A stretch of 64,000 nucleotides of DNA from Octopus sinensis (GCF_006345805.1 NC_043002.1:61690001-61754000); one strand, 5' to 3'; positions 34,921 to 39,754 are shown, counted from the first letter of the stretch. The notes: generated by a model from the letters alone, not told the origin. Program-made: numbers and translations.

Positions 34921-35796
34921 ATGGATGTAGACCACGTAATCAAGTCAATAATACTTTCACTCGTCGTAAGCTTCGGTTCCGTGTTTAATATCTACTGCTT
35001 TGTGTCAATTTTGAGAAGCAAAATTAGGCGATCAAAAATATGGCTGTACGTTGTAACTATGAACGTTTCTGACACCATCGCTATGTTCGGTTACGGTATC
35101 ATAATCATATGTCATTTGAATGAGCTCTCTCTACTGAATGATATAAAAACCTTATGTAGATTAGTGTTTCTACTAACGGCATTTTCCGGATTTGTTTCAA
35201 CTTGGGTTTCAGCAACTATCGGTATTGAACGGACATTATGCATTTTCTTTCCCATCATACACCGCGTAAATTGTAGTTCATCTTTCACAATGACTGTGTT
35301 ATTAATCACAATTATTGTATCCCTGCCATACACAGTGGTGGCCACTATTTACATCCGTGCTGATAACGTCTGTTTTTATAAATACAAACATTTGTTCTAT
35401 ATAGATGTTACTCTGCAGGCTATACTACCCTCTGTGATAATGGGCTTTTGTAACATTGCCATTATCTACAAACTTTTTCATCGGCCTACTTCTATAGGAA
35501 CCAATCCGTCATCAAGGCATGCTGTCAAATCGCTTAAGCTCATTTTGGTCAACAATTTCATATTCATTGTTACGAATGTGATGGCGTTACTGTTTTCAAT
35601 TATATCAGATGAATATGACTTGCTTCAATCCGAATACTTTGTATATTACTTACTCGGAACTGTATTAAACCATTTCACTAACGTGTTTTTCTATCACAAC
35701 ATGGCCTTCCAGGTTAGGGCTATGTTTAAATTCGATAAGCGGCTCAAGAATTTATGGACACCCAGTGCCGACGCTCTGGCTCTATCAGCATATTGA
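34921..35796 (+). CDS. Class A-like 7TM GPCR (FMRFamide-receptor-like / molluscan chemosensory-like), 291 aa, intronless CDS
   Basis: Seven hydrophobic segments; TM1 GSVFN, TM2 NVSD, TM3 C..STW..IGIERTLCIFFP, ECL2 Cys, TM5 LP..CN, TM7 NHFTNVFFY; intact frame; AATAAA at 35861. Confidence 0.9.
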   Translation: MDVDHVIKSIILSLVVSFGSVFNIYCFVSILRSKIRRSKIWLYVVTMNVSDTIAMFGYGIIIICHLNELSLLNDIKTLCRLVFLLTAFSGFVSTWVSATIGIERTLCIFFPIIHRVNCSSSFTMTVLLITIIVSLPYTVVATIYIRADNVCFYKYKHLFYIDVTLQAILPSVIMGFCNIAIIYKLFHRPTSIGTNPSSRHAVKSLKLILVNNFIFIVTNVMALLFSIISDEYDLLQSEYFVYYLLGTVLNHFTNVFFYHNMAFQVRAMFKFDKRLKNLWTPSADALALSAY

Positions 35797-37929
35797 ATAT
35801 CTTACTGGAATCACAATGAGTACACATGAGGAAATATACCGTTTTCAGGAATTATAATTGAATAAAAAAATTGTAATTACACAATTACATACTTAAAACT
35901 TCGTTATTTGGTCAGTTATTGTTGATTAATTGGTGTTGCTCTCCATTCTGTAAAGTAATGAGTTGCAAATCTACACACATTGTGGTCTAAGCTTTTTATA
36001 GAATCGGTACCTCTTAACTATTAAATCACATATTTAAGTTAACATCTTCTATTTACATATTAGATACTAAGAGACACAATAAGATGCATATTATCCTGAT
36101 GCAGTGTCATTCTTGCTCGATGGTACGATGCATGGTATATGATAAAATGAAGCTTTTCCAGCCACATAATTCTTTCCAGAAATGTTTTTGAAGAAAGATG
36201 CAACTCCCAAATTATCGGAATAATCTTAATTACATCTATATACCTTAGCGCTACTCATTCTGTGTTAACAAAGAACAAGGTACAATATATATATATATAT
36301 ATATATATATATATATATATATATATATATATATGTATTGGCCTACCCGCTTAACCAACGGGATGGCGTCATTTTATGGCTAAAACAACGCGAAGCGCAT
36401 TGTGACACGTGATGTGTAGCGAAATCTCATAGCCTGGTCGGTCACGGTAATCACGGTGATATATATATATATATATATATATATATATATATGTATTCAT
36501 ACTATTTACTTAATGAATACCAAGACGTACATTGGCCAATATTGCAGTGCGCTGCAGATCCTACGTTGCAGTGATAATCACATATTCATCCATGCTGCTC
36601 TAATGTAATCATTTCTCGTTGAATTGATAAATTGATTGTAGTAAATACTATATTTTAATAATCAAAGTCTTTCATACGTTAAATATGAAGGTTAAAACGT
36701 AAAGAGTTTCAAATTATAGATTACGGTCAAGAATTTATGAAGTTTTACAGTGTAAAATTACTGTATTCGATATGGAAAATACAGAATACCTTTTTAATAG
36801 TAAGAAATCCACACTTATAGGACGCTCCCACTTATGGCAGATGTTGTAAATGATAGCTGGGCATTCTCACAATCAAAATACCAATCCGTTAACGTCGTCT
36901 CTTGATATTCTAGTAAAAGTAACGTAATTTACTTCGCATCACAATCCAATTCTGCATCCATATCCTTGCTTGTAGGTGGCCTGACGTTAAATGGGAACAA
37001 TAACTATGCCGTTCTGTGACGTCGTTCGTATAGAATAATTAAGCATACATAGGGAAACTCTAAGTCCTATATTTCTCTGGGATATGGTGAAACTATAACG
37101 AAGAATTGGTATATATTTTTAGCGAGAAAGCTATTCTTATTTAACAAACTATTTAAAACCCCGTCATAAAAATTGACAAAAGTTTTATGGAAAACAAAAT
37201 ATAAATATCAATTTCTTTACTTTGTAACTATCTCAGACACTTTTAGCAGTTGTACTACATTATCACAGAGGAAGGTATTCAATAAATTCACGGAAAATAA
37301 ATTTGTAAATTCTTTGTCTTTTGACAAGGTAAAAGCCAAATGAGTACTCACTCGCGAGACATTATCCAGCCACAGTATTGCACAGGTATTCTGAATGAAA
37401 AGTAACGGATATTTAAGCAATGTCACCTTAATATTTCTTCTGAGGTCGACTAAATGTTAGAGCTACGGCAAAAGAAAGTGACAAAAGAAATGCCAAACTG
37501 AAGAAAGCAAAACATAATTGGGGTCATCTTGTTAGAGTAAGCCTGCCGCAGTCCCAATGTCCCAATGCGAAGGAGTATTAAATTCGAAGACGCTGTTATA
37601 TGCAGGCAGTGGCTCTCAAGTTTAGTTTCTCAGGCGATCCATGACATAAAAAAATGGCTGTTAAAATGTTTGTCTGCCCGTATTTAGCAATATAAAAAAC
37701 AACGACTATATTGTCATTTGAAAGTTCATTTGAACATTGAATTAATATTCTTCTTTTCTAATGCTGTCCCAGGAGTTGCTATGCGGTAAGAAGCTTGTAT
37801 CCCAACAACATGATTCTGCGTTCAATCCCACTGCGTGGCACGTTGGACAACTGTCCTCTACTATAGGCACGGGCCGACCAAAGGCTTGTGAGGTGATTTC
37901 TTAGACCCAAACTAAAGACGCGCGTCGTA

Positions 37930-38145
37930 TCTATCTATCTATCTATCTATCTATCTATCTATCTATCTATCTATCTATCTATCTCTCTCTCTCTCTCTCT
38001 CTCTCTCTCTCTCTCTCCTCTCTCTCTCTCTCTCTCTCTCTCTCTCTCTCTCTCTCTCCTCTCTCTCTCTATATATAATATATATATATATATATATATA
38101 TATATATATATATATATATATACGTATGTATATATATATATAGGG
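37930..38145. repeat. (TATC)n(TC)n(TA)n microsatellite
   Basis: Direct reading. Confidence 0.95.
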
Positions 38146-38330
38146 AGAGAATTCACAAAAAAAGTCGAAGACAGATGGTGTAAACAACAAATAAATTTAT
38201 TAGTTTAACGCTCAGGAAGTGAAAAAGTCTTTAACGTTTCGAGCCTAAGCTCTTCCACAGAATCGAACACAGAAAGAAACAGGGAGAGAAAATAAAGAAT
38301 GTGTAGTGGCTAATGATCTATATTGGCAAG
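38140..38330 (-). mobile_element. HHR1/pLTR fragment abutting (TA)n
   Basis: - strand CTGTGGA A GAGC TTAG GCTC GAAAC GT T AAAGAC at 38227-38260. Confidence 0.7.
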
Positions 38331-38829
38331 GATATGTATATATATATATATATACATGTATGTATTTATGTATGTATGTATACGTTTGTGTGTCTGTGTT
38401 TGCCCCCCCCCCAACAGTGTTTGACAACAGATGGTGTGTTTACGTCACGGTAACTTACCAGTTCGGCAAAGGAGGCCGATATGATAAGTAGTAGGCTTAC
38501 AAAGTATAAGTCCTGGGGTCGATTTAGTCGAGAAAATGTGGTGCCCCAGCATGGCTGCAGACAAATGACTGAAGCAAAAAAAGAATTAAAGAATATCATA
38601 CACTCAAACACACACAAATATATATATATAATACATATATATAGAAGAATACGTATGTGTGTATATGTGTGCCTGTGTGTGTGCGTGTTTTATACGTTCA
38701 CACGAGTCTTGATGCCTCACTCAATGTTTTTGTATATGTCCAACGGATATATATCCGTGCATACTATTTCCGTATTATGATGAATGTTAAAATTGTGTTG
38801 TATATAAATGCTTTTCAGTTTTACTTATT

Positions 38830-38853
38830 TATTCATTTATTTTTGTTTTACAG
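38830..38853 (+). promoter_or_regulatory. Splice acceptor upstream of GPCR-2
   Basis: Same TTTATTTTTGTTTTACAG, ending 38853, 22 nt before the ATG at 38876. Confidence 0.6.
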
Positions 38854-38875
38854 CAAACACTTCCATCGGGAGACA

Positions 38876-39754
38876 ATGATTTTAGAGCATGTAATCCAGT
38901 CAATAATACATTTATTCTTCATACTCTTCGGTTCCGTGTTTAATATCTACTGCTTTGTGTCAATTCTGAGAAGCAAAGTTAGGCGATCTAAAATATGGCT
39001 GTACGTTATAACTTTGAACGTAACGGACACCATCGCTATGTACGGCTACAGTATCATAATCGTATGCCATTTGCACGTGATCACCATACTGAATGAAATC
39101 AAAGCCTTATGTAGATTAGTGTTTCTACTAACGGCATTTTCCGGATTTGTTTCAACTTGGGTTTCAGCAACTATTGGTATTGAACGGATATTATGCATTT
39201 TCTTTCCCATCATACACCGCGTATATTGCACTTCATATTTCACAATGACTGTTTTATTTATCATAATTATAATATCTCTGCCATACACAGTGGTCGCCAC
39301 TATTTACATCCGTGATGATGATGTGTGCTTTTTTAAATACAAACACATATTCTATATAGATGTTACACTGCAGGCTATACTGCCCGCTGTGATAATGGGC
39401 TTTTGTAACATTGCCATTATCTACAAACTTTTTCATCGGCCTACTTCTATAGGAACCAATCCGTCATCAAGGCATGCTGTCAAATCGCTTAAGCTCATTT
39501 TGGTCAACAATTTCATATTCGTGACATCAAATATAATCGTGTTACTGCTTTCAGTATTATCAGATGATTATGACTTGATTCAGTCCGATCTGTTTTTATA
39601 TTATTTTCTCGGAACCGTATTAAACCATTTCACTAACGTGTTCTTCTATCACAAAATGGCCTTCCAGTTTAGAACCATGTTTAAATTCGATAAGCGGCTT
39701 AAGAAGAATTTACGGATACCCAGTGCCGATGCTGTAGCTCTATCAGCATATTGA
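38876..39754 (+). CDS. Paralogous 7TM GPCR, 292 aa, intronless CDS
   Basis: About 58 aa differences from GPCR-1 by manual alignment; same motifs (NVTD, IERILCIFFP, NHFTNVFFY); AATAAA at 39805. Confidence 0.9.
   Translation: MILEHVIQSIIHLFFILFGSVFNIYCFVSILRSKVRRSKIWLYVITLNVTDTIAMYGYSIIIVCHLHVITILNEIKALCRLVFLLTAFSGFVSTWVSATIGIERILCIFFPIIHRVYCTSYFTMTVLFIIIIISLPYTVVATIYIRDDDVCFFKYKHIFYIDVTLQAILPAVIMGFCNIAIIYKLFHRPTSIGTNPSSRHAVKSLKLILVNNFIFVTSNIIVLLLSVLSDDYDLIQSDLFLYYFLGTVLNHFTNVFFYHKMAFQFRTMFKFDKRLKKNLRIPSADAVALSAY

Follow-up and report, generated by a model that had tools for sequence, protein, structure and literature searches.

We identified a tandem pair of genes, here called A and B, that encode an orphan class-A G-protein-coupled receptor (GPCR) in a 64-kb stretch of Octopus sinensis DNA (GCF_006345805.1 NC_043002.1:61690001-61754000), to which we refer as the window and whose numbering is used throughout. 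Gene A is a single-exon coding sequence (CDS) at 34921-35796 (+) for a protein of 291 amino acids, and gene B is a single-exon CDS at 38876-39754 (+) for a protein of 292 amino acids; the two are 80.4% identical in protein and 88.7% identical in CDS nucleotides. The pair looks like functional orphan receptors in which the ligand side is diverging and the signalling side is shared. We give about an even chance to the joint explanation that best accounts for our results, namely that A and B are tandem duplicates of an orphan class-A GPCR gene that is so far octopod-only and that has a role in skin. An original prediction had described the pair as minimal, non-canonical GPCRs and candidate cephalopod chemoreceptors, and its individual claims are taken up below together with the results that bear on them.

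The two genes are arranged head to tail with a duplication period of 3955 bp (~3.95 kb). By blastn, the first unit (34792-38746, +) contains gene A and ~3 kb of 3' flank, and the second (38747-42299, +) contains gene B and its 3' flank. The matching segments are 34792-36308 against 38747-40284 (83%) and 36752-37966 against 40856-42031 (86%). The 3' end of the second unit is approximate and is marked by a repeat at 42100-42299 that blastn matches to 38391-38593; this short repeat has a third member at 42817-43016. The duplication starts only ~130 nt 5' of the ATG. Unit borders coincide with microsatellites, (TA)n at 34667-34800, (TATC)n/(TA)n at 37928-38142 and (TA)n/(TG)n at 41993-42072, which are possible substrates of the unequal exchange behind the pair, and a further microsatellite of the (TA)n/(TATC)n/(TG)n type is found near the borders at 42665-42789. 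A tblastn search of the 64-kb window revealed no third copy, pseudogene or fragment of A or B.

Matches of the two proteins to the Pfam 7tm_1 family (PF00001) are weak, with 32.6 bits for B and 28.0 bits for A at a gathering cut-off of 30.5; the two octopod orthologues described below, P0001 and P0002, score 38.5 and 30.9 bits. The AlphaFold2 model, which is of gene B only and was built from a 62-sequence alignment, has a mean predicted local distance difference test score (pLDDT) of 86.9 and a predicted template-modelling score (pTM) of 0.85. It consists of seven transmembrane (TM) helices and helix 8 (residues 2-31, 40-66, 76-109, 120-143, 156-187, 196-228 and 238-278, the last comprising TM7 and helix 8). 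A Foldseek search of the PDB with this model retrieved class-A receptors only, with template-modelling scores of 0.65-0.76 and a probability of 1.00 to many of them, and the matches included the mu-opioid receptor, C3aR, TRHR, OX1R and SSTR2. As modelled, the gene B product is a class-A seven-helix bundle resembling peptide receptors. Its extracellular surface is nearly nil, with about 2-5 residues in the N-terminus and ~9-12 residues in each extracellular loop (ECL). This agrees with the earlier observation that only a few residues precede TM1: N1.50 is residue 23, which leaves about 2-8 residues ahead of TM1, and the first model helix begins at residue 2. The absence of an N-terminal sequon was likewise borne out, as N-x-S/T sites occur only at N48 and, in gene A only, at N117, and none is extracellular because N48 sits in TM2 and N117 in the cytoplasmic intracellular loop (ICL) 2.

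Residue positions follow the generic numbering, anchored on conserved alignment columns, and differences between A and B were placed by this numbering and not on model coordinates. In gene B, N1.50 is N23, D2.50 is D51, C3.25 is C79, S3.39 is S93, the ICL2 proline is P111, the ECL2 cysteine is C151 and P5.50 is P170. Further toward the C-terminus are N7.45 (N250) and a phenylalanine-arginine pair in helix 8 (F265-R266). The sodium-pocket and transmission residues D2.50, S3.39, N7.45, N7.49, R3.50 and Y7.53 are retained, as is F6.44, and the four octopod sequences all agree at N23, D51, R104, C79/C151, P170, N254, Y258 and the ICL2 proline. The motif changes listed in the original prediction are all present. 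Positions 3.49-3.51 read E103-R104 followed by T in A or I in B in place of DRY (ERT and ERI), no tryptophan occurs in TM4 (residues 120-143), so that W4.50 is missing, and the NPxxY motif is N254-V-F-F-Y258 (N7.49 to Y7.53, with V255 at 7.50) in both proteins. In TM6, F215 (6.44), S/T218 (6.47), N219 (6.48) and I/M221 (6.50) replace FxxCWxP; 6.50 is Met in A and Ile in B, and I, M or V across the octopod clade. Position 5.58 is N178. The missing W4.50, Y5.58, CWxP and P7.50 do not decide class-A membership, because many bona fide class-A subfamilies lack them.

We compared these motifs with those of 58 non-octopod relatives. Among these, 45 have E at 3.49, 56 have R at 3.50 and none has Y at 3.51; 6.48 is T in 42 of the 58 and never W, and 7.50 is F in 55. 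ERx, the lack of W6.48 and Y5.58, and NFxxY are therefore the family norm and provide no evidence of a special mechanism. P6.50, on the other hand, is kept in 57/58 relatives and lost in the octopod clade. In this alignment the loss of P6.50 and V for F at 7.50 are the only features specific to the octopod clade, so that the original view of the motifs as non-canonical holds for these two, but not for ERx, T6.48, N5.58 or NFxxY, which are normal among the relatives. Put as a signature of the Srw type, ERx, W3.41, N5.58 and FR are shared by the octopod proteins, and T6.48, P6.50 and F7.50 have become N, I/M/V and V. Two positions that are atypical when set against textbook class A are also conserved in the family, W3.41 (57/58) and N5.58 (51/58), and both are kept in the octopod proteins (residues 95 and 178 of B). 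The four octopod proteins end in -ALSAY (35782-35793 in gene A, 39740-39751 in gene B), and two more distant relatives, P0003 and P0004, end in -ALTAF and -KSAI. Such an [S/T]-A-hydrophobic-COOH tail resembles a class I PDZ-binding tail and may be a scaffolding or trafficking signal; the pattern is a loose one, found in 20 of the 62 aligned sequences.

Only two close relatives were found among 5.8 billion clustered proteins. One, P0001, is UniProt A0A0L8IB86 from Octopus bimaculoides, annotated as a 'G-protein coupled receptors family 1 profile domain-containing protein', with 291 amino acids and 84% identity to A (81-84% over B and A); by sequence it is the orthologue or co-orthologue of A and B. 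The other, P0002 (78% identical), was found in the Logan assemblies for runs SRR11869384 and SRR11869391. When 1.84 billion representatives were searched with a profile, one match fell below 1e-30 (P0001), six below 1e-10 including P0001, and 255 below 1e-3. No one-to-one orthology with a conserved neuropeptide receptor was found; the best match outside octopods has E=1e-19 at ~26% identity, and the best non-octopod matches are 22-27% identical. No record was returned when the exact sequences of the two genes and of P0001 were looked up in public assemblies. Pfam classes 48 of the 62 aligned sequences as Srw-positive, and the four octopod proteins are not among them: A, B, P0001 and P0002 have no match to Srw (PF10324, threshold 22.2 bits) at E<=1 or 1e-3. 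The kinship with FMRFamide-receptor-like and Srw proteins that had been proposed thus stands for the surrounding family, but is not seen as an Srw match in the octopod proteins themselves, and from these matches we place the A/B gene as a very divergent offshoot of the Srw/FMRFamide-receptor-like lophotrochozoan group. In a maximum-likelihood tree, the octopod clade and P0004 lie on a separate long branch with support 100/99. P0004 is a protein of 290 amino acids from contig L006 (run SRR11869385, of the same run series as P0002), ~25% identical to gene B, in which EAS replaces ERx, so that R3.50 is lost, and the TM6 region is seemingly shortened. No other relatives of P0004 were found in the 5.8-billion-protein collection, and no repeats common to its contig and the window were found.

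Divergence was estimated by the Nei-Gojobori method from three DNA sequences: A, B and the orthologous octopod contig L001. A versus B gave a synonymous divergence (dS) of 0.21, a non-synonymous divergence (dN) of 0.099 and dN/dS of 0.47. The values were 0.38, 0.113 and 0.30 for A versus L001, and 0.475, 0.112 and 0.24 for B versus L001. By these estimates the pair is under purifying selection that is somewhat relaxed between the paralogues. Four full-length intact open reading frames (ORFs) are known from three octopod sources, and A and B are not chance ORFs: the reading frame is also undisrupted in the orthologues of both other octopod sources, and dN/dS against L001 is 0.24-0.30. The recent divergence that had been proposed for the pair is supported by the tandem arrangement, by the dS of 0.21 and by the non-coding flanks, which are 81-86% identical between A and B versus 72-80% identical to L001. 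This suggests that the duplication, or a homogenisation, postdates the split from the L001 species, a comparison that gene conversion may bias. We also tried to date the duplication relative to speciation from the four proteins, but informative sites split 5:4:1, with no clear preference.

One part of the coding sequence has no differences between the two genes. The 134 nt at 35432-35565 (+) in A and 39387-39520 (+) in B, corresponding to CDS nt 512-645 and residues ~172-215, are identical, and none of 20000 permutations produced a run as long (p<5e-5). This stretch is not simply invariant, because A differs by 12% from L001 there (88% identity), and we interpret it as a gene-conversion tract. 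It covers the cytoplasmic half of TM5, ICL3 and the cytoplasmic half of TM6, so that the G-protein-facing surface is identical in both proteins. A second identical A-B run of 70 nt is found at CDS nt 230-299.

The remaining differences are clustered, with a variance over 15-residue windows that exceeds all 5000 permutations. They peak at the N-terminus and TM1, at TM2-ECL1 and at TM6-ECL3-TM7, as the original prediction had noticed, and part of this clustering is due to the gene-conversion tract clearing TM5-ICL3-TM6. The extracellular half is enriched in differences, with 40 among its 133 positions versus 18 among 159 in the inner half (p=1e-4). Polarised by the two orthologues, the changes fall on different parts of the two proteins. 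Those derived in A lie in TM1-TM2 (residues 12-14, 35, 45, 47, 50, 56 and 59), and those derived in B comprise residues 2-4, the TM6-ECL3 residues 216-222, 231 and 235, and the change from ERT to ERI. Codons 1-30 contain 12 non-synonymous and 1 synonymous differences (Fisher p=0.028 against the rest; a binomial estimate against neutrality gives ~0.16), and codons 211-240 of B versus L001 have a dN of 0.31 and a dS of 0.32. Positive selection in the N-terminal codons or in TM6-ECL3 of B is possible on these counts. No region had dN/dS significantly above 1 in the comparisons of A, B and L001, and the shifted ligand specificity that had been proposed stays at the level of inference.

Expression data are available for the orthologue. 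A0A0L8IB86 is Ocbimv22023137m (Scaffold3495:29071-29946(-)), a class A receptor in group 0, which is outside the four expanded groups, i.e. non-expanded (Ritschard et al. 2019, PMC6408891 Table S2). Its Tau is 1, a value that often reflects very low counts, and its expression proportion in skin is 1.0 (PMC6408891 Table S2). The transcript is at 0 in embryo, testes, ova, viscera, posterior salivary gland, retina, optic lobe, sub- and supra-oesophageal brain, axial nerve cord and sucker, and the olfactory organ was outside the sampling (PMC6408891). Of the sensory organs named in the original prediction, then, the sucker shows no RNA and the olfactory organ lies beyond these libraries. Since RNA of the orthologue was detected only in skin, our best guess is that the receptors act at the periphery, in skin. 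We considered whether they could be opsins, given this expression, and rejected the idea, as position 7.43 (residue 248) is Val in B and the retinal-binding Lys is absent. Lineage expansion was also not found. The test for a large copy number covered the 64-kb window and the protein databases, and yielded, besides A and B, a single protein from O. bimaculoides, which is in group 0, and one from another octopod source.

Taken together, these data suggest how the pair could work. TM1 would serve as an uncleaved signal anchor with the N-terminus outside, a topology that fits the acidic tip (MDVDH/MILEH) and the basic ICL1 (RSKVRRSK). A small diffusible ligand would bind in the outer half of the bundle, between TM2, TM6, TM7 and ECL1-3, and the signal would reach a G protein, docked at ICL2 and TM5-ICL3-TM6, by way of the sodium-pocket/R3.50/Y7.53 network that is still in place. 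TM6, which lacks W6.48 and P6.50, would move without the usual proline hinge. Gene conversion could hold the cytoplasmic face identical, and since this face is the same in A and B both should use the same transducer. The complementary divergence of the outer half, in TM1-TM2 of A and in the N-terminal tip and TM6-ECL3 of B, might reflect different ligand tuning. The two copies probably have different ligand tuning and one common transducer. A role in chemosensation is plausible, and we slightly favour a chemical cue from outside the animal over a paracrine ligand made within it.

Several observations weigh against this interpretation. The orthologue has zero RNA in the sucker, which is the known chemotactile tissue, and the skin-only signal may be a handful of reads. 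There are 1-2 copies, versus the dozens that are typical of chemoreceptor repertoires. Variability of the extracellular half is generic to GPCRs, and constraint that was relaxed once the gene had duplicated could also account for the A-B dN/dS of 0.47. The loss of W6.48, P6.50, Y5.58 and P7.50 could mean that there is no G-protein signalling. Finally, the acceptor-like site that lies 22 nt before the ATG may leave room for an upstream coding exon.

Alternatively, the pair could be receptors for an endogenous ligand (a neuropeptide, amine or lipid) and not for environmental chemicals; the ligand would act locally in skin, with chromatophore or dermal muscle, glands and nerve endings as conceivable targets, and the duplicates would simply be drifting. 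All of the Foldseek structural neighbours are indeed peptide or lipid receptors, and the nearest sequence family is FMRFamide-receptor/Srw-like. Furthermore, orthologues of ~80% identity in at least three octopod sources, together with the low copy number, fit such a receptor better than they fit chemoreceptor repertoires. The non-expanded status of the orthologue (Ritschard et al. 2019) and its lack of sucker RNA point the same way. However, neuropeptide receptors are usually conserved across molluscs, and outside octopods there is no orthologue above ~26% identity. Non-expanded GPCRs are mostly nervous-tissue-specific (Ritschard et al. 2019, PMC6408891), yet none of the brain or axial-nerve-cord libraries has RNA of the orthologue. 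So small an extracellular surface is uncommon in peptide receptors, and a protein divergence of 20% between congeners is fast. On balance we consider this account as a whole somewhat unlikely, but an endogenous ligand as such is nearly as likely as an external cue.

The acceptor-like site raises the question of whether the gene models are complete. A 44-nt polypyrimidine block ending TTTTACAG lies at 34855-34898 (+), 22 nt 5' of the ATG of gene A, and exactly the same 44-nt block lies at 38810-38853 (+), 22 nt 5' of the ATG of gene B. It is ~90% conserved in the orthologous contig L001 (at about 198-241), far above the neutral flanks. In the distant relative P0003 (contig L003 of run ERR3431203, at about 200-229), which may be from a mussel as the adjacent run ERR3431204 is of Mytilus coruscus, a T-rich tract ending TTTTAG is found ~28 nt before the ATG. 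The block looks like the 3' splice acceptor of a 5' leader exon, and we infer that a leader exon without coding sequence precedes the one coding exon, which is a frequent arrangement in GPCR genes. A and B might even share an upstream leader exon or promoter, since the duplicated unit begins only ~130 nt upstream of the ATG. At the other end of the genes, the first AATAAA/ATTAAA motif after the stop codon was located by pattern search at 35861-35866 (+) for A, a candidate poly(A) signal in a stretch that is conserved in B and L001, and at 39805-39810 (+) for B.

If the acceptor instead joins an upstream coding exon, the minimal N-terminus would be an artefact of seeing the last exon. The identity of the block in A and B and its conservation in L001 are consistent with this, as are the 22 nt from AG to ATG, which are free of in-frame stops in A, B and L001, and the O. 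bimaculoides model, which is exactly 876 nt of CDS only and so gives no independent support for the start. On the other side, the open frame upstream of the ATG is non-coding, because beyond the AG it contains no ATG in A and is interrupted by a TAG in L001; for the same reasons we rejected a longer N-terminus from an upstream ATG, seen in B as MMNVK 33 codons upstream. The start context has A at -3 in A, B and L001 and G at +4 in A and L001. In the model TM1 is already complete, with its helix from residue 2. Moreover, 11/58 relatives, P0003 among them, also have 25 or fewer residues before N1.50, and in P0003 the ATG likewise follows an acceptor-like site. A leader exon with a single coding exon is a common layout for GPCRs in general. 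We therefore regard a missing coding exon as unlikely.

We consider it very unlikely that A and B are non-signalling or decaying proteins (relics, decoys or chaperone-like partners) in which the loss of W6.48, P6.50, Y5.58 and P7.50 has put canonical activation out of action. In favour of this, P6.50, present in 57/58 relatives, is I/M/V in the octopod clade, gene B varies most in the CWxP region (codons 211-240), which as a rule does not vary, A-B dN/dS is 0.47 and the sister lineage P0004 has EAS without R3.50. Against it, the four ORFs from three sources are full-length and intact with between-species dN/dS of 0.24-0.30, no change is seen at R3.50, D2.50, N7.49, Y7.53, the ICL2 proline or the cysteines of the disulfide, and the model is confident throughout the bundle.

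Returning to a pair of signalling receptors with diverging ligand sides, the idea can be extended further, to an octopod-only receptor with non-canonical TM6 signalling that serves a GPCR chemical sense of the skin beside the nicotinic-like chemotactile receptors of the suckers. Its copies would be kept identical by conversion on the G-protein side and selected apart on the ligand side, perhaps behind one leader exon and promoter with alternative splicing to the identical acceptors. We see this full combination as a long shot. If the gene is skin-restricted, an octopod-only GPCR would nevertheless be a cheap candidate for GPCR chemical sensing outside the suckers. The pair is also a natural experiment in GPCR mechanics, a receptor of 291 residues whose extracellular loops and tails are all but absent and which lacks P6.50, W6.48, Y5.58 and P7.50. 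The orthologue was already known from UniProt and a published GPCR survey; what this work adds is the duplicated arrangement, the mosaic ascribed to gene conversion and the comparison of motifs.

The window around the pair is AT-rich (~34% GC), with many microsatellites and transposon debris, and no host genes other than A and B were recognised in the 64 kb. Fragments of a non-long-terminal-repeat retrotransposon lie at 18578-20629 (+), with a Pfam RVT_1 match of 34 bits at 19127-19504, and fragments of a mariner/Mos1-type transposase at 16211-16739 (-), with an HTH_48 match of 35.5 bits at 16392-16739. Directly upstream of gene A, frameshifted ORF fragments of 86-142 amino acids (33449-34602, -) are probably a degraded mobile element. 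They have the appearance of a reverse transcriptase, an assignment that we did not retain, as Pfam and PDB sequence searches gave no significant match. Pairs of short repeats a few hundred bp apart occur at 45834-46136/46260-46562, 60145-60501/60708-60977 and 41928-42266/42585-42983; these, together with the three-member repeat at 38391-38593, 42100-42299 and 42817-43016, are SINE-like (short interspersed element) or tandemly duplicated units, and in some the ORF translations match.

Several known receptor systems can be compared with the pair. We found no specific sequence relationship of A and B to vertebrate odorant receptors, and the likeness is a functional analogy. Odorant receptors are also class A proteins of ~310 amino acids with a single coding exon and often non-coding leader exons, and they too occur as tandem duplicates with gene conversion, lack CWxP and vary in the outer halves of their TM helices. 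Unlike A and B, they form repertoires of hundreds of genes and retain MAYDRY, NPxxY and a glycosylation site at the N-terminus. The gene in O. bimaculoides is much closer: A0A0L8IB86, like A and B, has a single 876-nt coding exon, ERT, NVFFY, the ALSAY end and no P6.50, and differs in being annotated as one copy instead of a tandem pair.

The cephalopod class-A expansions of groups 1 and 2 (Ritschard et al. 2019) and the lineage-specific expansions of lophotrochozoans (Nath et al. 2025) resemble the pair in being class A, tandem, tissue-specific outside the brain and faster on the extracellular side. In contrast, they comprise 20-60 copies versus 1-2, and the orthologue here falls in group 0. 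Lineage-specific expansions are moreover defined by the absence of between-species orthologues (Nath et al. 2025), whereas the A/B family has recognisable ones. Cephalopods reportedly have unusually few lineage-specific class-A expansions, and the contact chemoreceptors known from them are ionotropic, with chemotactile receptors of this type as the alternative (Nath et al. 2025). The Srw/FMRFamide-receptor-like relatives (PF10324-positive: P0003, P0006, P0010, P0014 and P0005) share more of the detail. Like the octopod proteins, they have E-R-x, W3.41, N5.58 and no W6.48, together with N-x-x-x-N-[F/V]-x-x-Y in TM7, F-R in helix 8 and CNIAIxYKLxxRP in TM5, and some are similarly short at the N-terminus, with 275-317 amino acids in total. 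They differ from the octopod proteins in standing above the Srw threshold at 22-27% identity, in keeping P6.50 and in having F at 7.50.

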